A stretch of DNA of 64,000 bases, taken from assembly GCF_000143415.4 (NCBI RefSeq), contig NW_003314339.1:303751-367750 (forward strand), read 5' to 3'. The stretch comes from Selaginella moellendorffii. Taxonomy: Eukaryota; Plantae; Lycopodiophyta. This document shows, one piece after another, positions 17,540 through 48,220 of the stretch. Numbering within the stretch: the first letter of the stretch is position 1; every line of letters starts with the position of its first letter. The translations under genes were made by a program, and so were the position numbers. Below the pieces are notes generated by a model. The model was not told the origin of the DNA and did not search any database. It worked only from the letters and a program-made list of their open reading frames with translations.

Positions 17540-18400
17540 GCCTTACATAGTTCTTCAGGAAAGAGCATGGTTGATATCCTCTGACTCGAGCTTATTATCT
17601 GTGCAACTCAGTGGCCACAGCTAAATGAGGTATGTGCACGCGTTCCAGCTCAATCCTCCTTCAAGCAGACACTTCGATGGAATATTAGCTGTAAGAATGG
17701 AAGTGAGTCCAGGCTCCCTAACTAGTTGTTAATTCGAAGGTGGGAGTTGACCAGCTATTGTCAGTGGAGAACTATACCAAGGCAAGGTACAGAACTCTTG
17801 CCTTCTTCGAACTCTGCCTTCTTCCATTTGTTTCCATTTGTTTTTCAAAGTAGAAGGCCAAGAGTATGAGCGCAGGCATTTTGCTGCATGCGAATATGAA
17901 AAGCTTAACTATATATCTGCTAAAGGCAAGAAGGTGGTCGTGATAGGTCAGGTGATACAGGAACACATTGCATCGGTACTGCAGTTTCATCACAGCTGCA
18001 AGAACGTTGATGGATTTTGTTCTTCTCAGGCTCTTGGTTGGAGTGGGATGATATGTTCACCACAGTGACATTCGAAGAGTTGGTCTCGATCATAGAGCTA
18101 CTGAGAATCCTTGCCTACTGGTAAGAGTCAAGGCAAAGGAGAAGTTCAAAGTGGCACACAAACACATTTTATGGCAAATTTACTACAAATGTCAACAGTG
18201 TCTTTGCTGCTGGTGACTGTTGAAGAGGACAATCACTAGTTGTGTGGCCAATTGCTGAAGGGACGCAAGCATAGCACAGATTGACAAGTTTACCAAGGTT
18301 GGCAAGGACAAATGTAGTTTTTCTAGAAGCCCTAAACATCAAATCTTCCCATGTCATTGATTCAAATATCCCGCTCACTGCTTCGAATGTTGGCAGAATA
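17540..18400 (+). pseudogene. GLT1: NADH-GOGAT beta-domain fragment, copy 3 (inverted relative to copy 2)
   Basis: NYISAKGKKVVVIG and [30 protein letters not shown]. Reverse-complement similarity to 13400-14050. Confidence 0.82.
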
Positions 18401-18429
18401 CTACTAGACAGCCACCTATTTATTTAAGG

Positions 18430-20200
18430 TGATGACAAGGTTTAGAGGTGAATCTTTTAGTGTTTTGGCAGATCCGATGAAGTTGTTAAATAACTTTTAG
18501 AATATTAAATTAAACTGAGTATATTTAAAAGGTTTATTTTTAACTTTTATTAATTTTTCCAACAAAATATAAATGATAATATATAACTAAATATAACTCA
18601 AAATAAGAAGAAAATTTTATTATAATAAAAATTCTTTTTAGTTAAAAATTTAAGAAATGTATATATTTAATTAACTTATATACCACTATGCTAATATTAA
18701 TACTTTACATTGTAAATATATATTTAAACCTCATATCATCCCCTTTTCTCAGAAAGATAGAAGACAATTATAGTCCCTTAATTGATAAACTGAGATTTAA
18801 AAGAACATTAGGAGGCACTAGTAAATTTATAAGTGGTGTAGTGTTTTATTGATCCTTTTATATGAAATGCTTAAGTTGTTGCATATGTAAAATTTTTCCT
18901 TAAGTGATAAATGACCTCAAAGTTATATATTTGAAACTTTAAAACCCACTAAACTATACAACTAACTAATTTCTTCTACTTTAATAATGAAGTGACCATA
19001 CCCCTTAACAATGTCAAAGAACCATGTAAGTATATATGAAGTTTCTCAAAACCCTAAACTATTACTAACCACTCTTTCTTTATTGTGGAGTGATTCATTT
19101 CTATTAATTATAATTTATGATTGATGTATATGATAGGATGATATTAACTAGGTATATTTATGGTCTCTTGCAAATCTCTAACATGATTTTTAAAAGCATC
19201 CATTTGCAAGATGAAAAGTCAAGTGTAATCAAGATATGCCAAAATTAGAGGAGTTGTCAACACCTTTTTAAGATTTGCAAATGCTCATTCACAATTCTCA
19301 TAATATTGATGGCCTTTTTTAAACTCCTCTCCCTTCTTTACTCTTTTCTCATATTTTTGATGAGCCTATTGCTTTAGTATCAATGGATTTTTTAGATGAG
19401 GATTCCATACCATCAACATTCACTATATTTGATATTTAGTATCCATAAGATATGGATCTAGATTTACTTTTTCTTGATAAGGTTTATGAGGTTTAAAGGT
19501 TAAGTTATGGATTTGAAAAATTTATGATAAGTTTAAGAATCATACATTATTTGTTGATAACTTGCCATTTTGGCATTTATATTTTTAAAATCACCTTAAA
19601 GACAACTTTCTTTATTTTATGGGGATTGATCCTAATGACTATTTGGAGTTGGTGGTGTTTTGGATATTTATTCCACATTTTTTCTACGCCTACTATAATT
19701 CTTCTATTTTAGGTAGAGACATGAGATATTGTCATGTGATTGAGAAGCTGCACAAGTTTTTCTATTAGCCAAAGAAGTGATATAATGTTATCTAATATAT
19801 GTATAATTATGTTTAGTGTCAAACTCATAATACTCCTCTTCATATTGTGGAAGGATAGTTGAAGTTAATTGCAGTTTTTCAATTTCTATTTCAGTTAGTG
19901 GCATTTGATTTGATAAGACATTTTCTATGGTTGATTATTAACAATAAATACATCATTATTATTTTTGACTATTTGACTCAGTGGGTGGAAATTAGTGCTC
20001 TTGCTAGGGCATTTATAATTGTTATTGAATATTTCTTCCTCAATCAAGTGGTATTTCAATATTCATATCTAGAGCATATTCTCTTCAATAATGTTCCCAT
20101 GTTTATGGTTGAGGCATTTTATATTTTTACGTTTCGACTAAGGATATACCATATTTATAGTGTTTATCATCCATAAATAGATGGTTTAGTCCTTTAAAGT
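18430..20200 (+). mobile_element. Highly decayed AT-rich LTR-retrotransposon remnant with integrase core
   Basis: 19859-20190 reads YIIIIFDYLTQWVEISAL..FFLNQVVFQYSYLEHILFNN..YHP*IDG, a degenerate rve core. The left boundary is set by AT richness only. Confidence 0.55.
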
Positions 20201-20484
20201 AATAAGTACAAAATACATGAACTTTCAGTAGCTAAGTTTGGACTTGAAATTGGAATAAAAAGTGATGTCTACATTGCAAATATGTTCCCAATTTATTAAC
20301 AGCTACTCTCTCAATTAAAAACATGAGAGAGGCTAAGCTGGCCTATATTGACCAAGTCAAAGTATTCCTAGAATGTTTTAACAAATAAAATGAGCCATTA
20401 TTATTCCTATTGATTAATTTAATTAAACAGTTTTATGTTTAGTTAATAACTGACGAATATCCTGGAATATACCAAATATCTCTA

Positions 20485-21560
20485 TTATCCTTTTCTTTTA
20501 TTGGGCTTGACGAAAAGATGTCCAAGATCACTAAAAAGGCAATGCAGATAACTCAGAGCTGGGCCTTCATTGCTGCACCTGCAGCAGAGCTTACTGGCGC
20601 TTGATCCTTCATCATAAACTTTGAGCTTTTTGTTGCTCCTGAAAGCATTGTGAATGTCCCCCTTTAATCTTAACACTGAAGGAGAAGTACCTGAATCGTT
20701 CGCTTTCCTCTGTTTTTTCTTGAAAATCTCAGGCTCGGCATCTTCCAAGCTGCACAACATGTCGTTAGAAAAGCCAACAAAACTGTAACCAAAAAAAAAG
20801 TGCACCTGTGGCCATCAGATTCCCGGAAACTGTCCACAGCACTTCTGCACACAACAGAGGGCCTGTGATTGCTGCATTTACACTGTTATGAACAAAAAGT
20901 TAAGCTACCCTCGGTGGTGGGCATCCCTCTTGCTCTTGGAAACCTCCCTGACGCTGCTGGGACCTTCCATGACACTAAAGCACAAATGACAATGTCAAGG
21001 TGGCAATAGAATTGATGATGTAAAGAGTACCCCTGAACCAAAGCAATGTACACCTCCTTTGGAGTTGGCCAGACCTTGTCGATAAGTATATGAGTTTGGC
21101 ACACCCTTTCCCTGGCCGTGGGCTCCCCCGACAGGATGCTCTTGAGGTCAAACTCACACATTTTTGCAAAAGCCACGTGCTGAAACAGAAAGCGCAAGAC
21201 CATCAGATCAAGGAGATGAGCCATTCAAATGGATACTCGAAGCAAGTTCCATGAGGAATGATGCGAAGCATGCGCAGATCTTTTTCAGAAAGGTCCTCTT
21301 GAAACTCAGGAGGCACTGTGCGGATAGTCTTCCGGATTTAGCACTTTGAGCTCCCTGGCCCTGGACACAAATATTTAAGCGAATTCACAAAAATAAGAAA
21401 GGAAAACGGGAGACATACCTCGTTGAATGTAGCACTGCATCGAGGTAAAAGCAAGAGTAGCTGGCTGCTGTTATGGAGCTTTCGTTTCTCAGTCAAGACT
21501 GCATGTTGACTTATTACCCGACCAGCCTTTTCTCCTTGGAAAACCTGCTGCCATAAAAGT
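20485..21560 (-). pseudogene. Inverted, internally deleted paralogue of the orphan gene at 10912
   Basis: High reverse-complement similarity to 11775-12790 (MCEFDLKSIL.GEP.ARERVCQ.HILIDKVWPTPKEVY). 21520-21555 matches 11015-11050, so about 700 bp is deleted. Confidence 0.85.
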
Positions 21561-21749
21561 TGGCTCATACAGAAACCGTAAAACTAGGATTAAGTCGCCA
21601 TTTTTTCATATTTTTTGCTACTTTTTTAAAGATTAGAGCTTTTTTGGATCGAACATGCGACTATTTTTTGGTATGGTATGACAGCTCCTCACGACTATAC
21701 TGCTTTGTGATTCGCACTAGTCTTGCATTGCAATTGTTATAAAGAACCT

Positions 21750-24700
21750 CAAAAATAATACCACTTCATCAATATGCTCTTCATCCTTATCCTAGCAAAG
21801 GATGTTCAGAGTTAGTAACTAAAAGATATTATGAATAAATAAAAGACTTACACTATTGAAGATGATAACAAGCCAATGGAAAATCTACTCCTTCGCTCTT
21901 GTAACATTTAGATTTTGAGGAAACAAAACCAAATTCAGAATAGTGGATACTTATTTCTTTAGTGCCAAACACAAGTTTGGAATGCCATCTTGAATAGAAT
22001 CTATGTTGCAAGCAAAAAGAATATTTATGTCAATAAAAAAATCTGGATCTATGAGCATATTATCTCACTTGCAGGACTTTGTATAGTCACATGGATGTCT
22101 CGCCATAAGCTTTCTCTATTGTTGCAGTTCCAATGACAACGTGTCGCTGCAACCATTGGTATAACAATCTCATCCTTGTTATTTGAAGATCTTGCATACA
22201 AACCATATTGAAAATTATAAAGTTATGTGTATAAAAATTGATGTGGTTACAAGTCAACTTCTGGTTAAGCGTCTTCACGTTCAAGTTATGCCTTGCATTG
22301 CCCTTGCCCAACCTTCACACTCATAATCACAAAACTCACCACAATATTGTTCACTTGAATGACAACTTAGGGGTGGGAAAGTCTACTTTCCTCAAATACA
22401 TCATAAGGATAGAAGTTGATGAGCCAAGCTCAGTTTTAGAGACTATCTCCTATCTTTAGCTCACAACCATAGAAGATATGGTTTGACAATTTGCACTTAT
22501 AAACTTGCTCAATAAGTTTAGTTCTTCACTACACTTGCCTCTCAGAGTTGAGGTAAGCTACTTAGTAGTTGGAGAATGACTCCATCAACTCTATGTGTAG
22601 CTTTTTCCTAGATAAAGTTGATGGGAGATCAACATAACACTTCAAGTACTTCTTGCCCTTAGAACATGGTGTTGCATTTCTTAGCCACCCCTCTTATTAT
22701 CCTTGACTTGGTATAGCTCCTTGGCAAGGATATTCCACTATTGAGATGGATACCTACCATCATCTTCATAGAGTGCTTTAGTCATCCAACACTTGCAACC
22801 ATTTTTGACTATTTGCTCACTTGTGTCTAGGAGATTCTTGAGCATCCTCAAGTGCATCCCTTATTTGTGCTCCATAGTTCATCCAAGTGGCATTATAGAT
22901 CTCTAACTTGCCATTGCATGACACTTAACGATATAAATAGTCACAATATAATCACACAATCCCTTCCTTGAGACACAAGGGTCATTGCCATCTATGGGAT
23001 AATAAAAGCTCAAGTGCATGTGCCTCTTCACACTTACAAATCTCTAGGCTTTCTCTTACCTTATTTGTATTGGCCAATTCAATTAAAATTATGGGTACAT
23101 TGTACAAAACCTAGCTCACACACAGGAAGTTTAAACGAAAACCACCATATCAACTCTAATAGTATTAGCAAGCTAACCATCACTTCACCTCATAAGAGGT
23201 AATTCCACATGATACTTGCTTAGTATTCTATATAGAATAAATTATCAACACCTGAAGCTCACTCTTTAACTTCTTCTCTAAGATCAAGTTCGTTTGTTAC
23301 TATATCCAAAGTGGTAGTCTCTCCAAATAGACATTATTGGTTCATTGAAGCCTTCTTCTTCTTCAATTTCTTTGGGGGTATGAAGTTATTTCCACAGATG
23401 AAGCCATGGCTTGTGTCTTGAAAACTTAAAAAAAAAACCACTATAAGAACACATAGTTTTAAATATAGCTTTACCTATTTTGATTATTTTGCAAGCATGG
23501 TTCTATTTTCAAGGCAAATCAGAATGTAACTTTGGTAGAAAATACTTAAAAATCATAATTATATGGTTTTTCAAGTGAGATATGTTTTGCTTAAATCAGA
23601 AAGCTATTCTTAGTAGAGGTTATAGATCTTCAATACCAAATACTAGCATAGATCACTTTCATTTTGAATTTCAATGTACATCCATCGAGACTTTAATTGT
23701 CCTATTATCTAGTAAGTGCATCCCTTCCAGAGGTCGGGACTCTTTGCACGTATTAGCTGAGAAAGTATAGTTATAAATGAAAACTATAAATAGCCAATGA
23801 GATATTATCTATTCTTTTTTTAGCAACTAATTAACTATTTCTTAGTTATCATATAGAACTTTAGTGGTGGATCAGTACAATAGTTATATGTTTTAGCTCT
23901 AAGGAATGTGCAGTTTTATTACACTTGCATCCTACTAGTGGATGCTATAATTGAAATGCCACACTATTAGAACACTTCTATCTTGTTTTGGGATGTAGTT
24001 TTCATGCATTTCTAAGAGGTGTTTTCAACAACAATTGTCTAATTTATCACTAATGTGACTATGGGCATTGAAAGTTGTTTGTCAAAAAGTCTTTTAAGAT
24101 ATTCTTTTTTTACTTAGGATGGCAAGAGATTGGCATTGTTAATTCTCTTTATCAGTCTCCACTCAAGCTAATTGAGAAAACCATTTTTATATGTGCACTT
24201 TGCCATATGACCAGTTGTGACCATGGTTGAGATGTTATTTAACTCTCTATTAAACATGTCTATCTTTTTCTTACATCTAGCTTGAGTTTAAACCCAAACT
24301 CAATATGCTAATTGATGGAGTATTTATATCTTCATATTAAGCCATCAATATATTGAAATAGTGCCAAACTCTATTTGGTTATATATAACATGCTACTCTT
24401 GGCATTAGAATGCTAAGTCTTCTAAGACTATTTCAATATTGCTCCATGCTCCTCTTCACTCTTTGGCTATATGTTTGAGAGTTGTTCCTCCTTCACTTTT
24501 AATTATATGCTTAAGAGTGTTTTGCATTCTGATTTCCTTATTCATTCTTGGGAGTTCAACTTTGTCTCTTCGTTTAATGGTCCAAAGCTTTAAACTTAGG
24601 TTTTACTCTGTTGCACGTGTTTAAAGGTTAAGTTCCACTTTGTGGTTATTTTATAATAATTCCTTATAAAGTAAAGAGTATATTACACAATTGAAATTGC

Positions 24701-27202: not shown

Positions 27203-27647
27203 TCCTCCAGAACAAATGCTCCTATGGGTCGTGAAGATACCTTGATTTTGAGAGCGCCAACGTCACTAGCTACGTGTATGAACGAGATTCCTGGTATGTG
27301 CTTCTTTTTCTTTCGGAAAATGTGCGCAGAGTCAAAGGTGTATCACGGAAGATCACTCTTTGAAAGTCAAAAGTCCAACAAAGCTCGTGACAAACAACAT
27401 TCATGAAACCCAAGATTCTTTTCTAAAATCTCACCACAAGTTCTCCACGATGTATAAAACAAAGCTTTGAAAATGATATCAAAACCACGCTGCCCGTCAG
27501 TGTCCATCCATCCAGTGATTGCATGGAGTTCGCAAAGAGATCTCTGCGTTTGAAGTCAACACGCTTGCGTGTGAGTAGACGATGGCTGTCAGGGAATTGA
27601 TCCATTACTTAAGGGGAGAGGAGTTTAGTTTGGGTGAGACGAATGCG

Positions 27648-30433
27648 ATGAGCGCCACGATCTTTCTTCGGGTGTTTTTGGCTCTCGGATCCATTGCTTC
27701 GGTATGTTGCATCCGCTCTAGCGATCTCCAGATCCTGCATAGTTTTAGTCAGCAGCTGGTAGACTCAAATGCGTCGCTTACAAGCTGGAAGTTAGAATCG
27801 CCATGCTCGTCCTGGGAAGGCGTGTTGTGTCGCGACGATGGCGTCACAGTGACAGCGGTCTTGCTATACAACAAGTTCTTGACGGGTCAGATATCTCCTT
27901 CGCTGGGCCACCTGAAATTCCTGCAACGCTTGGATCTCTCCCAGAATGGCTTGAGTGGAGACATACCTGTGGAGCTCTTGAAACTCACCGAGCTGACGAT
28001 GCTAAGCCTTTCCAGCAATCAGCTGTCTGGTCAAATTCCCAGGCACATGGAAATGCTCGAGAACCTGGAATATCTATACTTGTCAAGGAACAACTTGAGC
28101 GGGAGCATACCTCGTAGCTTGGGAAGCTGTCGAAGGTTGAAAGAGCTGGATGTTTCTGGAAATTACCTCGAAGGAAATGTGCCAGTTGAGCTTGGACAGC
28201 TTAGACGACTGGAAAAACTTGGCGTAGCCATGAATAATCTCAGTGGAGGCATCCCGGATTTTACAAACTGCACGAATCTCACGGACCTGGCGCTGTCGTT
28301 TAACAACTTAACAGGCAATGTACATCCAAGCGTGGCAACGCTGCCCCGGCTCCAGAACCTATGGTTGAATGACAATCAGCTCAGTGGAGACCTTCCAGTA
28401 GAACTTGGAAGACACAGCAACTTACTAATTTTATACCTGTCCAGCAACCGGTTCACAGGCACTATTCCCGAGAATCTGTGCGTCAATGGCTTTCTGGAGA
28501 GAGTATACTTGCACGACAATAATCTCCAAGGCGAAATCCCACGAAAGCTGGTCACATGTCCCAGGCTCGAACGGTTGTTGCTGCAAAACAACATGCTCAC
28601 GGGTCAAATCCCGGAAGAAGTCGGCCAGAATCAAGTGTTGAATTACCTGGATCTCTCCAACAACCGGCTCAATGGTTCTCTTCCAGCTTCGCTGAATGAC
28701 TGCAAAAATCTGACGACGCTTTTCCTCGCATGCAATCGCATTTCTGGAGACCTTATCAGCGGGTTTGAGCAGCTCCGCCAGCTTAACTTGTCGCACAACA
28801 GGCTCACTGGACTCATTCCTCGACACTTTGGTGGATCGGATGTCTTCACGCTGGATCTTAGTCACAACTCCCTTCACGGAGACATTCCTCCAGACATGCA
28901 AATACTGCAAAGACTGGAGAAACTCTTCCTCGATGGAAACCAGCTGGAAGGAACCATCCCGCGATTTATAGGAACTTTCAGCAAGCTTCTCGCTCTGGTC
29001 CTGAACAACAACAAGTTCACAGGCAGTATTCCCGGTGATCTTGGAGGCTTACATTCACTCAGACGGATCGACCTGAGTAGCAACAGACTGTCGGGTACAA
29101 TACCGGCTCGGCTCGAGAACTTGAGAATGCTGGAAGACTTGGATCTGTCTGCAAACAATCTGGAAGGCAACATTCCCTCCCAGCTTGAACGGCTAACAAG
29201 TTTGGAGCACCTCAACGTGTCATATAATAACCACTTACTAGCACCAATCCCGTCGGCCTCGAGCAAATTCAACAGTTCTTCCTTCCTGGGCCTCATAAAT
29301 CGTAACACCACCGAGCTCGCCTGCGCAATAAACTGTAAACATAAGAACCAGCTTTCTACAACCGGTAAAACAGCCATAGCATGCGGGGTAGTATTTATAT
29401 GCGTTGCTCTAGCAAGCATCGTTGCATGCTGGATCTGGAGACGTAGAAAAAAAAGGCGAGGAACCGACGACAGAGGCAGGACTCTCTTGCTGGAAAAGAT
29501 CATGCAAGTGACAAACGGATTGAATCAAGAGTTCATCATAGGACAGGGTGGCTACGGAACTGTTTACCGAGCAGAAATGGAGTCGGGAAAAGTTCTTGCT
29601 ATCAAGAAGCTCACTATCGCAGCCGAGGACAGCTTGATGCATGAGTGGGAAACCGCTGGTAAAGTCAGGCACCGAAACATCCTCAAAGTTTTAGGCCACT
29701 ACAGACACGGAGGATCAGCACTTCTCGTTTCCAACTTCATGACAAACGGAAGCCTGGGGAGCCTGCTACACGGCCGCTGCTCAAACGAGAAGATCCCGTG
29801 GCAACTTCGTTACGAGATTGCACTCGGCATTGCTCACGGCCTCTCATACTTGCACCACGACTGCGTGCCAAAGATAATTCACAGGGACATAAAAGCCAAC
29901 AACATTCTCTTGGACAAAGACATGGTTCCAAAGATTGCGGACTTTGGCTTGGCCAAGCTCATCGAGAAAGAAGCGGAGACAAAGTCCATGTCCTACATCG
30001 CAGGCTCGTATGGATACATTGCTCCAGGTAGAAAACAAAGAGAAACGAAGAAAGAAGCTCTCAACTCACATTTCTCTCTCTCTCTCTGTCTGCAGAGTAT
30101 GCTTTCACGCTCAAAGTGAACGAGAAAAGCGACATATACAGCTTTGGAGTGATACTTCTCGAGCTGCTGCTACGAAAGACACCGCTCGATCCACTCTTCT
30201 CAGAGACCGATGGAAACATGACGGTGTGGGTAAGAAACGAGACGAGAGGATCATCCACAGGCTTGGAAAGCGTGGCAGATCCAGAGATGTGGAGGGAAGC
30301 CTCCCGGATCGAGAAAAAGGAGATGGAGAGGGTTTTCCGGATTGCGCTGCTGTGCACAGAGGGCAATCCAGCGGACAGACCCACAATGCAGCAAATTGTG
30401 GAAATGCTGAGGACGACGCCAATCCATACCTGA
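27648..30433 (+). CDS. Leucine-rich repeat receptor-like kinase (LRR-XI-like, RD kinase)
   Basis: Signal peptide, CSSWEGVLC cap, many LxxLxLSxNxLxGxIP repeats, TM helix with RRRKKRR, and kinase motifs GQGGYG, HRDIKANN and DFG. Single intron 30028-30095 in GYIAP|EY. Confidence 0.93.
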
Positions 30434-30515: not shown

Positions 30516-32096
30516 ATGGAGGACGACTGGGTTACTCTTGTGAGAGCTTGCAAGACTCTCGCTAGGGCGAAAGCTCTCCACGCGAGGATCGCCGGCGCCA
30601 CGCACTCCCCGCTTGATTCGTCGGTTTTCCTCTCGAATCTCGTCGTCCAGATGTATGGGCGATGCGGGAGCGCGGCAGCTGCCCGCCAGGTTTTCGATCG
30701 GATCGCTTCCAAGAACAGCTTCTCGTGGATGCTGCTGCTGTCCGCGTATGCCCAGAATGGGGATGTGGAAGAGGCCAGGCGCGTGTTCGATGCGATGCCG
30801 GAGAGAGATCTCGTCTCCTGGACCGCGATGCTGTCGGCCTACACCCACAGCTGGAATCTGGGCGGGGCGATCGACGTCTTCCAGAGAATGCCGCGGTGGG
30901 ATCTCGTCGCATGGAATGCGATGCTCTCGGCTCTTGCCAGGGGCGGAGATCTTCGCCAGGCGCAGGCGCTGTTCGATCAGATGGCCGAGAAGAACATGGT
31001 GTCGTGGAATTCGCTGCTGGATGCCTACACCCAGCACGATCAACTAGAGGAGGCCGAGAGGATCTTCAATTCCATGCCGGAGCTGGATCTCATCTCGCTC
31101 ACCAGCATGCTCTCGGCATACACGCAAAGAGGGCGAATCGAGGACGCCAAGAACACCTTCGATCGCATGCCGGAGAGAGATCTCGTGTCGTGGACCGCGA
31201 TGATCAGCGCGTTTTCTCATACCGGATCTCTGCGCGAGGCCAGCGCCACCTTTCAGTCCATGCCCGAGTGGGATGTTGTGTCCTGGAACTCGATGCTCTC
31301 GGCATATGCCCAGGCGGGGCATCTGGAGGAATCAAAATCTCTGTTTGATTCCATGAAGGAGCGTAACTCTGTCTCTTGGAACGCAATTCTTTGCGCTTAC
31401 GCATCCATCTCAGAGAATCCGGTTGATGCCAGAAACACTCTTGAGAATATGCCAGAGCACAATCTCATCTCGTGGCATGCCATGCTTGCTGCATATGCTA
31501 GAAACGGGCATTTGGCTGAGGCTCGGGGGATTTTTGATTCGATGAGGGAGAGAAACACCGTCTCTTGGACAAGTATGTTGGCCTTTTACGCTCAAAAGGG
31601 GCATCTTACCGATGCCCGAGGAATGTTTTTGTTGATTCCAGAAAGATGGCTTGCTTCCTGGAATGCGATGCTTGCTGGGCATGCCCAAAGCGGGCATTTT
31701 GACGTAGCAATGGAGCTTTTCGGGGAGCTCCTCGTCGAGGGCATTGATCCCGACGAGACTTCACTCCTCTGTGTTCTATTGGGTCCAGCGCGAGTGGGCG
31801 ATCTTCGTGCTGGGTGGAGCTGCTTTGTGTCAATGACGAGAGATTTTGGGCTCTCTCCCTCGAAGCTCCACTACTGCTGCATGGTTGATCTCCTGGGCCG
31901 AGCTGGGCATTTGGAAAACGCGAGAGAGCTCATCAAAACAATGCCGTATGAGCCGGATTCTGTCGATTGGAAGTGCTTGCTTGGAAATTCGACAACGAGC
32001 GCTCACAAGGATAGCAGCGTTGCAATGGCTGCCTGTGAATCAAACAGGGAACTCTCTGCCCCTTATGTATTGCTCTCCAATTTATACAAATGCTAG
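30516..32096 (+). CDS. PPR protein rich in short (S/SS) repeats with truncated E extension (526 aa)
   Basis: Tandem 31-aa FDxMPERDLVSWTAMLSAY repeats, then HYCCMVDLLGRAG and terminal APYVLLSNLY. Confidence 0.93.
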   Translation: MEDDWVTLVRACKTLARAKALHARIAGATHSPLDSSVFLSNLVVQMYGRCGSAAAARQVFDRIASKNSFSWMLLLSAYAQNGDVEEARRVFDAMPERDLVSWTAMLSAYTHSWNLGGAIDVFQRMPRWDLVAWNAMLSALARGGDLRQAQALFDQMAEKNMVSWNSLLDAYTQHDQLEEAERIFNSMPELDLISLTSMLSAYTQRGRIEDAKNTFDRMPERDLVSWTAMISAFSHTGSLREASATFQSMPEWDVVSWNSMLSAYAQAGHLEESKSLFDSMKERNSVSWNAILCAYASISENPVDARNTLENMPEHNLISWHAMLAAYARNGHLAEARGIFDSMRERNTVSWTSMLAFYAQKGHLTDARGMFLLIPERWLASWNAMLAGHAQSGHFDVAMELFGELLVEGIDPDETSLLCVLLGPARVGDLRAGWSCFVSMTRDFGLSPSKLHYCCMVDLLGRAGHLENARELIKTMPYEPDSVDWKCLLGNSTTSAHKDSSVAMAACESNRELSAPYVLLSNLYKC

Positions 32097-37546: not shown

Positions 37547-40098
37547 ATGGTTGTGGAGACGCCCACTTCCAATCCGCTGCCTCCTCCTCCGCGGCGCCGG
37601 AACGATGGCGGATTATCGTCGCGCCAAGAGAATCTCTCCAATGCGGATTTCCGGCGGATGGTCATGGAGACGCCGCGGCGAGCTCCACCGGATGAGAGCT
37701 CCAAGGATCAACGCCCTAAGAAGTAAGTGTATAGGCTACATTACACTGGTGAATAGTCTCAAGTGAAATTTCGTCCAGGAAGAATGCCGATGAGAGCGCA
37801 AAGCGTCCTGCCCGAAAGTTTCGACCGCCCAAGCCCAAAGAGTGAGCGTTTCTTTTGTTCTTTTTCTTTTGTTCTCTTTACTTATGCGAGTTCATTGTCT
37901 TAGAGAGGAGAAGAAACCGACCAAAGTCGACGAAGAGGATGATTTGCCAAAATACCGCGACCGTGCTAAAGAGCGGCGCGAGGATCAAAATCCTGACTAC
38001 GAACTTATGGCTGCAGCATCTGGAATCAGCACCTTACACGCTGTAGCTCCTCCGGGAGCTGTCGACTTACAGTGAAGTAATTCTTTCTCACGTGGAAAAT
38101 CGTTTATGGTGGTGTTTTTCTATTCTCCCTGCAGGGCAGCTGAAATACAAAAGAAGATATCCATAGCCAACAGCAAGTACCTTGGAGGTAAGGTTACCAT
38201 TTCATAGATTTATGAATTGGCTCTAGTAACACAGGTGATGTCGAGCACACGCACCTGGTAAAGGGGCTAGACTACGCCCTCCTAAACAAAGTCCGGAGTG
38301 AGATTGATAAGAAACCCGAAGAGTTGGAGGAGCCTGAGGAAGAAATAAGGTGCAAAACGGACTCTTTTCTTGTGTTTTCTGAGAGCGCATGTCTTTTATT
38401 TTCAGGGTCAGCAAGACCGAGGACGAACCAATCAAGTTCAATACTCCAGTTGCCAGGGTGAGACGTTTGTGCGTTGTGTTTAGTTTTGAAGCTAAAGTGT
38501 TCTCGCAGGTGATATACAAATGGTTGGTCAAGCCTCCAACGTTGAGCAAAACAAGCGACATGTTTCTTCCGGGTCGGATGGCCTATGCGTTCGACATGGT
38601 AGGCTTTTAAGTTTGTCTGGTAATTTCTAAAAGTTTTTGAGACTACAGGAAGAAATGTCACACCATATTCCTACCACCGTGTACCGAAGCAAAGATGACT
38701 GTCCTACACCCGAGGTAAGGAAAAAAATAAGCCGCAGTTGTATTTACAGTGCTGGTTTTCATGCAGGAGTTTGTGACTGTGGGAGTTGATGTGGCTGTTT
38801 TAGACAGGATAGCCAAAATCATGGCTTATTTGAAGCTGGGAGCTTCCGGTAAGGTGAGAGAGTTTGTGCTTGATTTTCTTAGACAATCTCTAACACGTGT
38901 GCTCCAGGCCTCTAAGAAAAAGAGGAGAGATAAGTCCGACACAAAAGGTACGTTGTATGATTCGCTTTTTTAATGAGTTTCGACCGACTTGTTTGACATT
39001 CACCAGGCACTGCAAAAGAAGCCGCGGCACTGGTAGCACCGATTGACGTCAAACAACCAGAGACGCATGATGATGAAGTAGTAAAGAACAGGCCTTCAGA
39101 CACAGACGATGCCGCCGTCGAAGAGGAAGCACCAAAGCCTCGAGTGGCTGAAGACGACATATTTGCAGACGCTGGCACAGACTACGTAGTAACTATGGAC
39201 GGCAGCCCTCGATCCGAGGACATGGAGGAGTCTCCACGACGGGATGGAAATGGTGGCGATTCATACTTTCATGAGGAGCAAAGATCACATGAAGACTTGG
39301 AACAGGCAAGCCTTCTAGCTATAAGTCTTGGAAGACAACTGACTGTTTTTTGTTTACCTTCCAATTTTTGAATCAGGCTCCAATGCAAGGTCCTGCGATG
39401 CCTCAGTTCGGTAGTGAGTGGCAAGATTACCTTCCTCCTCCTCCAGACGATCCTTCTTATGAATACTACGCCAATCAGCTTAGCGTGGAGGGAAATGCAA
39501 GCGTTCCAGCAGCAGCCGTTGCTCCTGTTGCACCAAAGGATCCTCTGTGCATGACGCAGGAAGAGAAGGACAGAGGCATGAGTTCGGTGTTCAAGCGCGA
39601 CGATCAAAGGCTCCGTCAGCGAAGGGAGCTTGATTCTCGCGAGAAAGATCCAAACTTTGTGTCAGAGAGCTACTCGGAGTGTTACCCAGGCTACCAGGAA
39701 TACAACAGAGAGATAGTTGACAGCGATGAAGACGCGGACCTCACGAAAATGGACGTCGGTGGCAGGGTACGCAGATTTTCTTCGTCTTGTTTACTTTTAA
39801 CTGTGTTCTTCGCCAGGCTAAAGGGCGATTGCATCGCTGGGACTTTGAGACAGAGGAAGAGTGGGGAAAATACAACGACCAGAAAGAAGCCACTCCAAAA
39901 GCCGCTTATCAGTTTGGTGTCAAGATGCAAGATGGGAGGAAGACGCGGAAGCAAAACAAGGATCAGAAGCTCAACAACGAGCTACACAAGATAACTCAGA
40001 TAATGGAGAAGAAGAAGAGAGAAAAAGGGGGGTTGCATGAAGACGGTGACATTGTTGCCGAAGAAAGCAGCCATCCTGGGAAGAGAATAAGAACATGA
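37547..40098 (+). CDS. SMU2: Spliceosomal protein RED/IK (SMU2-like)
   Basis: LSNADFRRMVMETPR, PKYRDRAKERRE, SKYLGGDVEHTHLVKGLDYALL, SESYSECYPG and RWDFETEEEWGKYNDQKEATPKAAYQFGVKM. Confidence 0.92.
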
Positions 40099-40179
40099 AT
40101 ATAATGTAGAAACGGGGGAAATATCTCTTCGACATATAGATTCGACATGAATTTTTCATAAGTAACAACATTGGAACTC

Positions 40180-40647
40180 TCAGCAAAAGAAAAGGACAGC
40201 GTACAAAAAGATCATTAGAAGGATCCCTTGAACGATCCTTCCCCAATGTATGGTCTTGACTGGCTCATGGATGATTGATTGATTGACTGGTGGAATTGGT
40301 TGACCTTTATTCCTCTTTCTTGGGTGCCTTTTCTTCCTCTTTTTTTCCTTTGGATCTTTGTCACCAACATCATCGATATCTTCTTCAAGACCATCCAAAG
40401 TCTCAAATGGATTTGCATCTTTGTGCGATTTTACCTGGCAAGCGTTGGATTTGGGAGGCTCCATGAAATTTATTAGAGGAAGGTATGGAATCCGGACCCT
40501 TTCAGGCTCTGGGATCTCCCCCCAGCAGTAGTCGTGATCCTCAGATACCTCCTCCATGTACCTGTCATGCTTAGCCCTCCTCTGCTGCTCCAAATGAATT
40601 GTCCGTAGCTTCTCCTTAATCGGATCAATAATCCTTAAAACCTCCAT
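40180..40647 (-). CDS. Orphan single-exon 155-aa protein with a basic cluster and C-terminal hydrophobic anchor
   Basis: ATG-initiated ORF filling the gap between RED and COMMD, with a TATATATATA run about 30 bp upstream. Contains KEKKRKKRHPRKRNK and ends GILLMIFLYAVLFFC. Confidence 0.55.
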   Translation of the reverse strand: MEVLRIIDPIKEKLRTIHLEQQRRAKHDRYMEEVSEDHDYCWGEIPEPERVRIPYLPLINFMEPPKSNACQVKSHKDANPFETLDGLEEDIDDVGDKDPKEKKRKKRHPRKRNKGQPIPPVNQSIIHEPVKTIHWGRIVQGILLMIFLYAVLFFC

Positions 40648-40795
40648 GCTGGTGATTTAGGTGTGAACGATCTGTATATATATAGTAGTGCTGAAAAGGA
40701 GAGTTTGTGACCCTTTAAAGGGGAATTTATAGATTTAGTTTTTGCTGGAAAACTTTGGGTTTCTCAAAAAGAAGGGTTTAGGGCTAGTTTATAAA

Positions 40796-41126
40796 ATGGA
40801 TTCTCTAGTGGACTTCGATTGGAAGCTCAAGGTGAGAGAGAGCTTGCTTCTAGTTGTTCTCATCATTTGCAATGCAGTGGATGGTGAGCAGCAGCGCCTT
40901 GGGCAGCATCAAACAGGGCATCTTGCGCCTCGAGATGGCCTTGGCAGACAAATCCCCGCTTGTGGCAGAGCTGGACAAGCAAGAACTGGAGTCACTGATC
41001 GAGAGCATGGAAGCCATTTGTGCTAGCGTCGCTAGAAAAGAAGAAGAAGAAGAAGAAGAAAAAGGAGGAGGAGATTCACCCGATTCACCCGATTCACCCA
41101 ATTCACCCAAGATCCAAGGGAAATGA
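40796..41126 (+). CDS. COMM-domain-only protein (COMMD family, COMMD8/COMMD6-like), 94 aa
   Basis: Exons 40796-40831 and 40878-41126 give MDSLVDFDWKLKWMVSSSALGSIKQGILRLEMAL..AELDKQELESLIESMEAI, fitting the COMM consensus LxDxxW..SS..L.L..E+..EL..L. Confidence 0.8.
41073..41109 (+). repeat. 9-bp tandem repeat (gattcaccc)x4 encoding DSP/NSP, preceded by a (gaa)n poly-Glu run
   Basis: Directly visible in the COMMD C-terminal tail. Confidence 0.85.
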
Positions 41127-41667
41127 TCAAAACACAAGTTTATTACCCCTGGAAATTCTTCCTCGTCACTGGGAGATTCCAACCACGACCAGACAGACGT
41201 TGAAGGCAAGGCAGGCCCCCTTTACCCGGTGACGTGGCGCGCACGTGGCAGTCCCGGGTTGGATGAGCGTTGGGGACAGTAGTGGACTGGTGCTATAGGT
41301 ACTCTCTACCATCACACTTTGGTTTTTTAGAAGAGTGCGCTGGAGAGAGAGAGAGAGAGAGAAGCGAGGGAGAGAGAGAGAGTGACAGGGCACAACGAGG
41401 AGGGAGTTTATTTGTTTTTGGGCGGCCAAAATTCGAACTCGCAGGGGCCGCATTCCCATGAGCGAGAGAGAAAGAGAGAGTTTTGGCTCCTCTTTTTCCT
41501 CTCGAGTCTCGAGAGGGTTTCTTCCATCCGGCCAAAGAGGTGAGAACTCCTTGAGAACTTGGGTAGAACCAGCTTGGAGGCTGTGAGCTAGATGAGCTAG
41601 ATGAGCGAGATGGAGCTTGGAGCGGAGGAATTCGCGCTGGACTAGGCCAAATTCCACGACCCACAAG

Positions 41668-44600
41668 ATGTTCTACTCCCAGTTCATCCTAGCCAAGAAG
41701 GGACCGCTGGGTACCATATGGATTGCTGCTCATCTGGAGCGGAAGCTCCGGAAGAACCAAGTTACCGAGACCAACATCGGTGTGTCTGTGGGTAAGTCAC
41801 GATCTAGGATGTTGTTTCGTTGCTGAAAAGAGAGTTTTTTCTTTTCTTTTTCTAGATTCCATTCTTTGTCCCGAGGTTCCAATCGCGCTGCGCTTGTCCG
41901 GGCACCTGCTGCTGGGTGTTGTGAGAATCTACTCGCGCAAGGTCAACTACTTGTTCCACGACTGTAGCGAGGCTTTGGTGAAGATCAAGCAGGCCTTTCA
42001 CTCTGGAGCTGTTGATCTTCCACCCGAGGCGGCCACTGCTCCTTTCCATTCCATCACGCTGCCGGAAACTTTCGATCTCGACGATTTGGAGCTCCTCCCG
42101 GATCGAGAAGCGTTATTCCTTGCAAATAGGTGGTTATATGTTTTTTTTTCTTTGCTTGTCTGAATGAACGTACAAAACTCTTGTTTTCTTATCCTTTTTT
42201 TTTTTTTTTTGCAGTTCCATCGATCACCATGTTACATCGCGTGAGCAGATTACTTTGCAAGACACCATCGAGGACACTACGTATCTTAGCTCGCAATTTG
42301 GACTCGATGGTAATTTGTTTTTCTCTCTCTCTTGAGCTTTTGAAAAACTCTAGCTTTCGAGAAATTCTGAGCTTGTAATTGTTTGTGTCTACGCAGAAAG
42401 ATTTACAGATGGGGATGCTCCTCGTTTGGATTTTGGCGAGGTTTGTGTCGTGCTCTTTTATTTCTTGGCTCTCAAAGACTTTAACTTTGTATTTTGTTTC
42501 CAGGATGTTTTCACCGTTAAAGAAAAAGATCAGGAGAAAGGCGTGAGCGTCGAAGAAGAGTACGTAGCCAGTGACTGGAATGCGTAATAATACTTACTTG
42601 AGAACTATTGCTTTTTGCAGCCCCGTCTCGGTGGAACCGATGGATGAAGATGACAAAGCCGAAGAGAACATCGAGACCGCCAACGAGGTCCCTGAGCTCC
42701 CAAACGATGATGCCATGGACCTGGATGATCAGCTCAAGCCCTCGGTGGACGCAAACACTTTCGATATCAACGTAGTGCCCGTCGAAGAGGTACCACCGCC
42801 GCCACCATTAGCAGCAGAAACGAATGAGTTTGCAGCTACCACTGAAAGCGAAGTTACAACAAAAGCTGATGGTGGCGACGAAGAGATTGTCCCCGAGCTG
42901 GTGGCTAGTGATTCGCTGGTTGAAACTACAGAAACTCCGGCGGACGCTCGTGAGAATGAAGACGCTGCTCCTGCGGCTACTGCTGCTGCTGCTGCTGAAG
43001 AAGTAAAAGAAGGAGAAGAAGAAGTTTCACCGTCTTCGCTTGAGAAGAAGAACGAAGGAATCGTCCTGCAAGAGAACGAGCAAGAGGAGAGTCGCGGTGA
43101 CAAAGATATTACTCAAGAGCAAGACGCAGACAAAGAACAAGACAAAGAAGAGACTTTGGAAACTGAGAAGGCTGTGGACGAGGACAACGCGCAGGGCCGA
43201 GAGATTGCCGTGGAGAAGCAGCTTGAGGATGTGCCTGATATTGAGAAAGTCCGATCGGCTCCCGAAGTTCCGTTGCTGGAGCCAAATGTTTTGGAACTTC
43301 CAGAGCCGGATTCTACTCCAGCAGCACCAGCACAGAAGAAAGAGGACGTGATTGATGATCCTGTTCCTCTCGTCGAAGATACTCTCAAACTTCAGGAAGT
43401 CGAAGAAACCCCGAGGCTTTCTCCTCCATCAATGACGAGAATGCCGGAGTTTCCTTCTCACGGGGATGATGATTTACTGGCGTCGATTCTAGGTGCGTAC
43501 TCATACACTCAATCTTTTCGTTTTTCCTCATGAATCTAAGCTTGGAAAAAACACAGGTAGAAGAACACCTTCTCTAGTGGTGGCACCGACACCACCTGCG
43601 AAGCGCCACAAGCCCGGTCCAAAGCCCGGCTCGAGAAAGAGAAAAGTTCACTTCGACGAATCCATGGTTTTGGATGGCGAGTAAGTTTTGTTTTCTCTTG
43701 GTTGTTTGTAAACCACGTCCCTTACGACGTTTTCTCCATAGTCACATGCGACAGCAGCTTGCGGACACGAGCAGCATTCGCCGGGTTCGAAAAAGAGCTC
43801 CTTGCACCGATTATGAAGTCTGGGGATCGGAGAAAGATGGACTAGGCCAGCAAATGTTCGACGAACCTCTCATTCCAGGTACAACTCTTTTTCTTAAGTT
43901 GGAGGAGTGCTTCCTTTTATTTTTCTTTTCTTTTTGCCAGGATCTTGCGATATCATTCGCGAGGTTTATCGTTCTGTGTACAGTGCCGGTGATGCAAGAC
44001 ACAGTGTGGAGTCCGACACCACCGAAGTGTCCGCCAGGCATGACAAGTATCAGCTGGAGGAAGAGGAAAGTCGCGAACCGATCACTCTCGAGGAGGAGCC
44101 ACTCGAGGACGATCTATTCTATGACCTGGAAGCTAGCTATCGCTTTGAAGAAGGTCTAGAGCAACCCGACCCTTTTCCTCGGACCGAAACAGTTGCCAGT
44201 GCAGAGAAAGCCGACGAGACGACGATCAAAGAGAACTTGGACTCGGAAAGGCGGGACGCTTGTGACAAAGAGGAGGCCCAGCCATCTGATAAGCCTGATG
44301 TTGTTCTTCCCGAGGAGCGGCCGTGTCCTGCTCTCGCCGACGAACACACTCTGGAAACTCCCGCTGGAGCTGATGTTCCAGAGCAAAGTGAGGGAGTTGT
44401 GGTGCCTGCAGTCGTCAACGATGCCAAGGATTTGAACGCGCTTGGTGATAGAAACGAGCTCGTAAATGGTGATGAGAAGCCGGAGGAGGCGGATCAAACA
44501 CCAAAACTTGCTGAGGCTCGTGAGTCCGAAGCAACCGAAGAAGAAAAGGAAGAAGCTGGGCTTGACGCTGTCAACCTCGAGGATGGACAAGAAATTCAAG

Positions 44601-45580: not shown

Positions 45581-48220
45581 ATGCAAGCTTGGAGAAGAGG
45601 GAAGGGGGATGCTATAAGATGGATGAGGCAAAAGCTCCGGGATGGAGAATGGGCAATCTGGGGAGCACTGGCAAGCGAGCGTCTGGTCGACAAAGGAAAG
45701 GTGGAAGTGGAGATTGCGATCGAGGGCGGGCTCGCGGACGCTGTGGATCGGTTGGAAGAGACCGAAAATGCGCGAGTCTCCAGCAGCAGCTACGCGCTCT
45801 TGATCCGCCAGTGTGGAGACTCTGGAGATTTGGGCCGAGGCAAGCGCGTCCACGATCACATCTCTCGCAGCGGCCGCGACGGTGAGACGTTCCTGGGCAA
45901 TCTCGTGGTGGAGATGTATGGAAAGCTGGGATGCGTGAGCGACGCCCGCGCGGCATTCGATCGAATCGCGCAGCCCAATGCATTTTCGGTGAATCTGGTG
46001 CTTGCGGCATGCGCGAAGAGGCAGCGGATCGACGAGGCGCAGGGGATCTTTGAGCGTTTCTCGAGCGTGGCCGATGCCGTGGCATGGAATACGATGATTG
46101 TAGCATATGCCCATCCTGGGCATCTGTTGAAGGCAATGAGTTTGTTTGATTCTATGCCGGGAAGGAATGTTGTTTCGTGGAATTCTATTGTAAATGGTGT
46201 GCTTCAGCATGGATGCGCGGAAGATGCTGTCACGATGATGAACAAGATGCCACAACATAGCTTGGCGTCGTGGAACGCTGCAATAATTGCTTATGCCGAA
46301 GCCGGGCACCTGTGTAAAGTTCTTGAGTTCTTTCTTTCACGTCCAGAGCGCGACTTGATTTCGTGGATTGAAACCATCAGGTGTCTCTCAAAGAACGGAA
46401 GCGTCGACGATTCGAAGAGGCTGTATGATGCGATGCCGCAATGGAGCGTAGCTGTTTGGATCGCATTGCTGCAAGCATATGCCCAAGGGGGGCATATTGA
46501 CATCGCCGGGGCTTTGTTCGATGAGATCCCCGAAAAGAGTCTTGTGTCGTGGAACGCGATGATCTGGGCGTATGCAATCAACCAGCTAGCCGCCGACGCC
46601 AAGAAACTCTTCGATGCTTTGCCGGAGATGGACGTGATCTCGTGCAACACCATGATTAGCGCCTTTGCGAGCAGCCACTCGGTGCGAGAGGCCAGCCAAG
46701 TTTTCGAGAGCATGCCCGCGCGAGACACCGTCTCCTGGAACGCGCTCCTGCAAGGATACGCCGACGAGGAGTCCGCGAGCTTTGAATCGGCGAGAGCTTT
46801 GTTCGAGAGAATGTCGCACAGGAGCTTGTTGGGATGGAATCTGATGCTCAAGGCTTCCATGCAGCAGGGAGAGATTTATCACGCCGAAGAGATCTTTCAC
46901 GAGATGCCTGGACGGAACTTCTCGTCGTGGAACGCGCTGCATGGAGGATACGTCGAGAATGGTGTTCTAAGCCTTGCGGTGGCGGCGATGGATCGAATGC
47001 CCGCCATGGATCGAGTGGTGTGGACTGTGATGATCGGTGGCTATGCCCGCGCTGGATTCTTGGCCGAGGGCGAAGAGATGGTGGAAAGGATGCCCGACCG
47101 GGATGTTGTGGCTTGGAACTCGCTCTTGCAAGCTCACGTCGAGCATGGAGCACAGATAGAAGACGCAAAGAGGATCTTTGATGGCATGGCCGAGAGAAAC
47201 ATCGTGTCGTGGTCGGCGATGATCGGCGCTTTCGTGCGGCCGATGAAGCAGCAGAAGCTCACAATCAAAACGCGGGTTGAGATGGCCAAGTCCGTTTTTG
47301 AGCGAATGCCAAGCCGGGATATGGTGTCGTCCAACGCAATGGTGGTGTTCTTGGCGGACAATGGCTTGATCGAGGAAGCAAGAACAGTGGTGGAATCCAT
47401 GGACCGAAAAAACTCCACCTCTTGGAGTGCTCTTCTGGAAGGCTACGTGAAGAAGGGCTGTAATCGGGAAGCTCTCGAGCTCTACCGGTCCATGGACTTG
47501 GAAGCACAGAGCAATCCACAGTCGACTAACAGCAGGACTTTCGTGTGGATTCTGGAGGCCTGCGCCAGGAGCGTCGCATTGAACGCTGGCCGATCGATCC
47601 ACTCCGACTTGGATGATCTCCTCGCGAGGAATCATGGCAGCAGTAGTGTTTTGCTAGCTCCTTCTCTGGCCACGGCCCTGATCGACATGTATGGAAAGTG
47701 TGGAGAGCTCGACGAGGCCAGGAAGATCTTTGACGCTCTCTCCTGCAAGAGCATCTCGTGCTGGAACTCGATGATCGCGGCTTACACACAGAGTGGTCAT
47801 GGAAAGCAAGCGCTGGAGCTCTTCCTCTTGATGGGACTCGATGGCTTGAATCCCAATCACATCACTCTGATGATCGTCCTCTCGGCTTGCAGCCACTCGG
47901 GGCTCGTCTCCACCGCCCTGGATTTCTTCCTCGCTTCCATCCTCGGCCGCGACTTTGGCAGCGGTCTCATCCGCAAGGAGCACTTCGCGTGCCTGATCGA
48001 TCTCCTTGGCCGCGCCGGGCAACTCCAGGAAGCGCAGGAACTGATGGCAGCAATGCCGGTGGAGCCGGATCGAGTGGCGTGGAGCGCCATGCTTGGAGCT
48101 TGCAAAGCTCACGGCGATGGCGATCGAGGCGCCGCCGCGGCGGAGAGAGTGATCCAGCTCGATCCAAGCTCCTCGTCACCCTACGTTGCCGTGTCGAGCA
48201 TGCACAAGCAAAGAGTTTGA
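45581..48220 (+). CDS. PLS/SS-class PPR protein with truncated E extension (up to 879 aa; true start may be downstream)
   Basis: Many MPxRxVVSWN repeats, ALIDMYGKCG, ACSHSG, HFACLIDLLGRAG and terminal SPYVAVSSM. Confidence 0.92.
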   Translation: MQAWRRGKGDAIRWMRQKLRDGEWAIWGALASERLVDKGKVEVEIAIEGGLADAVDRLEETENARVSSSSYALLIRQCGDSGDLGRGKRVHDHISRSGRDGETFLGNLVVEMYGKLGCVSDARAAFDRIAQPNAFSVNLVLAACAKRQRIDEAQGIFERFSSVADAVAWNTMIVAYAHPGHLLKAMSLFDSMPGRNVVSWNSIVNGVLQHGCAEDAVTMMNKMPQHSLASWNAAIIAYAEAGHLCKVLEFFLSRPERDLISWIETIRCLSKNGSVDDSKRLYDAMPQWSVAVWIALLQAYAQGGHIDIAGALFDEIPEKSLVSWNAMIWAYAINQLAADAKKLFDALPEMDVISCNTMISAFASSHSVREASQVFESMPARDTVSWNALLQGYADEESASFESARALFERMSHRSLLGWNLMLKASMQQGEIYHAEEIFHEMPGRNFSSWNALHGGYVENGVLSLAVAAMDRMPAMDRVVWTVMIGGYARAGFLAEGEEMVERMPDRDVVAWNSLLQAHVEHGAQIEDAKRIFDGMAERNIVSWSAMIGAFVRPMKQQKLTIKTRVEMAKSVFERMPSRDMVSSNAMVVFLADNGLIEEARTVVESMDRKNSTSWSALLEGYVKKGCNREALELYRSMDLEAQSNPQSTNSRTFVWILEACARSVALNAGRSIHSDLDDLLARNHGSSSVLLAPSLATALIDMYGKCGELDEARKIFDALSCKSISCWNSMIAAYTQSGHGKQALELFLLMGLDGLNPNHITLMIVLSACSHSGLVSTALDFFLASILGRDFGSGLIRKEHFACLIDLLGRAGQLQEAQELMAAMPVEPDRVAWSAMLGACKAHGDGDRGAAAAERVIQLDPSSSSPYVAVSSMHKQRV

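Follow-up and report, generated by a model that had tools for sequence, protein, structure and literature searches.

Does a 94-residue reading frame in the lycophyte Selaginella moellendorffii encode a COMM domain that stands without the rest of a COMMD protein, and what would such a protein mean for Commander in plants? Commander ranks among the major machines of endosomal recycling. A typical COMMD protein combines an HN domain with a COMM domain, and ten COMMDs, paired as five heterodimers, make up a ring that CCDC22 and CCDC93 hold together (PMC10187114); the human COMMD2-3-4-8 combination has been co-expressed in E. coli (PMC10187114). Among plants, Commander has reportedly disappeared from Arabidopsis, four ancestral subunits are reported to persist in Physcomitrium (PMC10187114), and a moss COMMD2 was already found in ESTs in 2005 (PMC1079823). 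Seed plants are reported to have no COMMD or WASH genes and to have kept CCDC22/93 (PMC11397296, PMC9815543) along with a retriever-like core (PMC11397296). A first-pass annotation of the 64,000-nucleotide stretch of Selaginella DNA analysed here (the window) had described COMMDs as not recognised in Arabidopsis, where their absence is something that the literature bears out for that species and for other seed plants (PMC11397296, PMC10187114), and had proposed that the frame belongs to a reduced Commander complex in a non-seed plant.

Re-reading the sequence, we recovered a two-exon gene on the plus strand (40796-40831 and 40878-41126) whose product of 12 + 82 = 94 residues agrees exactly, in coordinates and gene model, with the one first proposed. 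Exon 1 (40796-40831, 36 nt, 12 codons, MDSLVDFDWKLK) corresponds to the first COMM-domain strand with its family-invariant Trp, and is followed by a 46-nt GT..AG intron on the same strand (40832-40877) that reads GTGAGA...TGCAATGCAG, with its CAG end at 40877. Exon 2 as a whole (40878-41126, plus strand, 82 codons and a TGA stop) divides into a COMM-domain part (40878-41036, 53 codons), which holds the remaining strands and the C-terminal helix, and a low-complexity tail (41037-41126) made of a Glu run, GGG, three DSP/NSP repeats and the TGA stop. This tail, the last 29 residues (KEEEEEEEKGGGDSPDSPDSPNSPKIQGK), is acidic with SP repeats, again as described in the first-pass annotation. The start codon lies in a good context (TATAAAATGG, with A at -3 and G at +4), and the probable 3' UTR on the plus strand at 41127-41327, delimited by RNA contigs, abuts or overlaps the start of the transcript of a RAD21-like gene. 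Repeats are found on both sides of the stop, a GAA (Glu) repeat in the coding tail (41030-41076) and, in the spacer, a microsatellite of (GA)n (41332-41392), both of which were passed over as repeats in the read comparison; the RNA contigs differ from the window by nine letters somewhere in 40968-41790, perhaps through a length polymorphism of one or the other.

The RNA used here consisted of assembled contigs from four public runs (X1, X5, X6, X7) of four studies, placed on 38200-43200, and we take these contigs to represent RNA because they lack, at GT..AG borders, the introns of both flanking genes, the RED-like and the RAD21-like one. The region of the COMM gene is transcribed in runs from all four studies. 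A single run (X1) supplies the splice junction, as one contig at depth 21.5 that joins 40831 to 40878 at GT..AG borders with a short side of 28 letters only; the joint is recorded as 40829>40876, which with a cut of +2 is the predicted 40832-40877 intron. Retention of the 46-nt intron also occurs, as seen from an unspliced X1 contig of a variant allele (40802-40997) and from an X6 contig end that keeps nine intron letters. Introns of the neighbouring genes range from 50 to 87 nt, with a median of 54 once the 46-nt intron is included, so that the intron of the COMM gene is short but within range.

To what family does the spliced product belong? The first-pass annotation had named a search with the Pfam COMM profile as a check, and this search supported the family while leaving the score short: exon 2 trimmed to 40878-41036 matched COMM_domain and, at E<=10, no other family, with an E of 0.0018 and 18.8 bits over residues 3-47 (profile positions 16-64 of 64), and the whole exon 2 with its tail gave COMM_domain as the better of two weak matches (E 0.0057, 17.2 bits), scores that apply to exon 2 by itself and lie below the gathering cutoff of PF07258 (22.4 bits). 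They do so because the first 15 profile positions fall on exon 1, whose 12 residues are too short for a scan of their own. The match itself reaches the end of the profile, leaving positions 1-15 for two unaligned residues of exon 2 and the 12 residues of exon 1. Since residue 3 of exon 2 matches profile position 16, exon 1, which reads ...DFDWKLK, brings the invariant Trp (DFDW) into the expected register. The Trp of the first COMM strand is reported to be strictly conserved across the family (the WRVD motif of COMMD9) and sits on the surface that meets CCDC93 (PMC6089597).

Comparison of the trimmed exon 2 with all solved structures aligned one COMMD only, human COMMD8, whose residues 129-175 matched residues 4-47 of exon 2 in a weak alignment (E 1.1, 13 bits). 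Within it the C-terminal helices are strikingly alike (ELDKQELESLIESMEAI here aligned to EMSREELQNLIQSLEAA of human COMMD8), and an L-x-L-x-M-x-L stretch of the COMM gene aligns to the L-x-L-x-L-x-V strand of COMMD8, an alternation that fits a strand. COMMD8 came through once the tail had been trimmed, the whole exon 2 having matched no solved structure, and exon 1 in its unspliced frame gave chance matches only among the solved structures and none in Pfam. In ESM-feature space the neighbours of exon 2 were almost all COMM_domain clusters at 0.80-0.83, scores that one third of shuffled proteins also reach, and they included an 86-residue cluster that is commonest in Streptophyta. Each of these scores is under its formal threshold; combined with an RNA-verified splice that restores the register, they make the COMM identity of the gene very likely.

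The contrary reading, that the frame holds no COMM domain and is either a short ORF arisen by chance or a helical microprotein of some unrelated kind ahead of RAD21, draws on the same sub-threshold scores and on two further results. A single-sequence AlphaFold2 model of exon 2 folded into an all-helical hairpin (pLDDT 79) rather than strands plus a helix; it contained no alignment, no strand 1 and no partner chain, and as the COMM domain is an obligate intertwined dimer, we took this model as uninformative. An exhaustive HMMER search of exon 2 against 1.84 billion representative proteins returned no match at E<=0.001, but at that database size distant COMMDs are out of reach of an 82-residue query, so the result records only that there is no close copy. 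A word search with exon 2 likewise gave no candidate relative, and among metagenome contigs 597 pattern matches yielded none that was confirmed. Against this reading, three independent kinds of search (Pfam, solved structures and ESM) lead to the COMM family and to nothing else, the Pfam match runs to the profile end with the exon 1 Trp in register after the verified splice, and the alternating stretch that fits a strand is the one that aligns with COMMD8. We regard it as highly improbable. A chance ORF in particular was rejected as a candidate, on the agreement of the three search kinds and the restoration of register by the splice.

Given a COMM domain, we asked whether an HN domain is encoded ahead of it. 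The ATG of the COMM gene sits eight residues before the Trp, at the first positions of the COMM profile, and an in-frame TAG lies at 40736, 60 nt before that ATG. Reading the plus strand upstream of the ATG, we found no other ATG, and the plus-strand ORFs at 40279-40574, scanned for an HN domain, gave no meaningful Pfam match. The RNA contigs, which are short and at the 5' end come from one run, report no junction entering exon 1 from upstream. The space that an HN exon would be expected to use is occupied by a divergent neighbour on the minus strand, a transcribed ORF of 155 codons at 40180-40647 whose ATG at 40647 is 148 nt from that of the COMM gene; since the RED-like gene ends at 40098, HN exons would need to lie beyond two other genes. 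The first-pass annotation had stated that there is no room upstream for an HN domain, and had looked to an upstream HN exon as the evidence that would tell against a COMM-only protein; the stop codon, the missing upstream ATG, the closeness of the neighbour and the results for the upstream ORFs and RNA junctions all side with its statement. The HN domain is a feature of the COMMD family that the COMM gene does not have; human COMMD6 likewise lacks it, yet counts as a member.

The minus-strand neighbour has an optional 52-nt intron (40383-40434), seen as a CT..AC joint in X5 only, with unspliced contigs in X6 and X7, and the CT..AC joint indicates RNA from the minus strand. In its unspliced frame the ORF has a hydrophobic C-terminal end, and it matched no Pfam family, no solved structure in a meaningful way and no relative in a word search. 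Within the 148-nt spacer that separates the two divergent start codons, a TATATATATA run at 40675-40684 is a possible TATA element, judged by its letters.

The GenBank gene calls pass over both frames. Those for this region (GCA_000143415.2, scaffold GL377643.1) include Nramp, RED, RAD21, PPR, an ABCA transporter and a further PPR-type gene, with none between RED and RAD21, so that the COMM gene and its minus-strand neighbour are both uncalled. Of the genes that are called, the RAD21/SCC1-like cohesin gene has its first coding exon at 41668-41790 on the plus strand (Pfam Rad21_Rec8_N, E 2e-13; annotated in GCA_000143415.2), and the exact product of an 879-residue PPR protein (45581-48217) is recorded once, in GCA_000143415.2.

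Several observations concern the surroundings of the gene. Three close ATGs (a repeated ATGAGC motif, then ATGGAG) lie in the leader of the RAD21-like gene at 41590-41667, just before its start codon. One intron of the RED-like gene shows two junctions, one with GT..AG borders (38851>38906) found in X5 and X6, the other with an extra letter (38853>38909) found in X1 and X7, which suggests alternative splice-site use or an allelic difference; in the same gene, 71 letters at 39302-39374 are skipped in all four runs with non-canonical CA..AT borders, and this could be a haplotype length difference or an unusual intron. Farther off, GC content falls to 0.30-0.39 at 18001-24000 against about 0.47 in the rest of the window, a stretch that may be rich in repeats or transposons. 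A long ORF for an LRR receptor-like kinase occupies 27582-30119, and a 526-codon PPR ORF lies at 30516-32096; the exact product of the latter is not in public gene calls, so that an annotated model must differ from it or be absent.

Is the COMM gene, then, a working gene, or what is left of one? Expression is low, at a depth of about 4-14 compared with 64 for RAD21 in X7. In X7 a contig covering 41093-41327 at depth 4.3 meets another that begins at 41316 at depth 64. In the remaining runs (X1, X5 and X6), single contigs begin at about 40870-40968, cross the stop at 41126 and enter RAD21 exon 1, whose ATG at 41668 is 541 nt further on. We read this as two units, the COMM gene being weakly expressed and overlapping the start of RAD21 with its 3' end, though some read-through may occur; because contigs continue into RAD21, part of the COMM signal could come from a long RAD21 leader. 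The variant allele carries two Leu>Val replacements and two silent changes in the COMM part, which thereby keeps its reading frame, and D>N and N>T replacements in the tail, where constraint consequently looks low, all these allelic differences being too few for a selection test.

These data bear on a second alternative, in which the HN exons of a once full-length COMMD disappeared from the compact Selaginella genome and the leftover COMM exons are transcribed, either from a spacer that acts in both directions or within long RAD21 leaders, to no working protein. The low depth, the mixture of spliced and unspliced RNA and the continuity of contigs with RAD21 would all suit a decaying remnant, as would the polymorphic tail, the lack of an ortholog in protein searches and the lack of a call in the GenBank annotation. 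What a remnant does not lead one to expect is a frame that is open over both exons in both alleles, an ATG in good context exactly at the domain start, a splice that restores the COMM register precisely, and allelic changes in the COMM part that are silent or Leu>Val. The distinct and much stronger RAD21 start near 41316 in X7 moreover argues that the COMM RNA is a unit of its own, and human COMMD6 proves that an architecture of this kind can function. Decay is therefore a possibility we hold to be doubtful, though it is the alternative we weigh most seriously.

We consider it probable that this is a real, expressed two-exon gene of S. moellendorffii and that its product is a 94-residue member of the COMMD family, a COMM domain followed by a disordered acidic/Ser-Pro tail, for which other COMM domains are probable partners. 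Judged from solved COMMD structures, such a domain would be unable to exist singly: the three strands and the long helix of one COMM domain would interlock with those of a second in an obligate dimer, and other Selaginella COMMDs are the likely partners. Such dimers would join through their sheet edges, and the N-terminal parts of CCDC22 and CCDC93, both of them kept in plants (PMC9815543, PMC11397296), would hold them together; to these the COMM-only protein may bind if it is made and functional, as we presume. Human COMMD6 shows that a subunit without an HN domain works in the ring (PMC10187114, PMC6089597); the loss would be tolerated as in COMMD6, with one face of the assembly left bare at that position.

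Which COMMD it might be is less easily said. The first-pass annotation had found the C-terminal helix COMMD8-like, and in this it has the solved-structure search on its side, where human COMMD8 is the sole COMMD aligned; the alignment is weak, however, and for the COMM part the closest ESM cluster that bears a name is COMM domain-containing protein 6 (0.83, 182 of 256 features). An affinity to COMMD8 may thus be suggested by the helix, and the ESM result invites the simpler proposal that the gene is an ordinary Selaginella COMMD6 ortholog, that is, the subunit already known without an HN domain, whose human form has the same architecture (PMC10187114, PMC6089597). But COMMD6 chains are present in the solved Commander structures, where COMMD8 alone aligned at E<=10, and an ESM score of 0.83 is within the chance range. 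Fish and amphibian COMMD6 keep their HN (PMC6089597), so that the human loss appears lineage-specific and a loss in Selaginella would be independent in any case. We accordingly find COMMD6 orthology unlikely.

The novelty lies in a COMM-only gene of a lycophyte, HN-less and passed over by the GenBank calls. The first-pass proposal of a reduced Commander in a non-seed plant holds in so far as a COMM-only protein is encoded in this lycophyte; a reduced COMMD set as such is not new, given the four published subunits of Physcomitrium and the published moss COMMD2, and the plant-specific, stripped-down ring that it went on to suggest is something we can only infer. With partial COMMD retention in early land plants already in print, and with function and orthology of the present gene only inferred, its significance is modest. 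It does show that COMM-only genes can escape both gene calls and protein databases, so that tables built on proteomes, such as the one giving Physcomitrium four subunits, may undercount, and the gene counts behind a 'reduced' Commander in early land plants may miss COMMD genes of micro size. A bolder extension, which we put forward as a long shot, is that Selaginella and perhaps other non-seed plants would keep a minimal CCC core with a small COMMD set like the human COMMD2-3-4-8 combination, that at least two of its subunits, including a COMMD8-like one, would have become HN-less independently, and that uncalled micro-genes would make the published plant COMMD 'losses' partly undercounts. An HN-less subunit that is not a COMMD6 would offer a natural experiment on the need for HN domains.

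Set beside known systems, the gene resembles several in part. Human COMMD6 (85 residues, in the CCC ring) shares with it a COMM domain with essentially no HN and a similar size (PMC10187114, PMC6089597), and differs in going without an alignment in the solved-structure search and in lacking the extra 29-residue acidic/Ser-Pro tail that follows the helix in Selaginella; the HN loss of COMMD6 appears limited to some animals (PMC6089597), which is what would make the Selaginella loss a separate event. Human COMMD8 (183 residues, paired with COMMD4 in the ring) gave the best and sole COMMD match in the solved-structure search and has a very similar helix, whereas it carries a full HN of about 115 residues that is absent here, and a match of E 1.1 and 13 bits is a lead and not a placement. 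With the COMMDs of non-seed plants, such as the four subunits of Physcomitrium, it shares the setting of early land plants that keep part of a set lost in seed plants (PMC10187114, PMC11397296, PMC1079823), but it is itself uncalled in GenBank, HN-less and invisible to protein-database censuses. Prokaryotic COMMD-like proteins, which form homo-octameric or homo-decameric rings, have no sequence link to the Selaginella gene, and all ten of the ten examples shown have an HN (PMC13392464); they matter here for their assembly, in which the central ring is made by the COMM domains on their own, and as evidence that a ring can have fewer than ten distinct subunits (PMC13392464).
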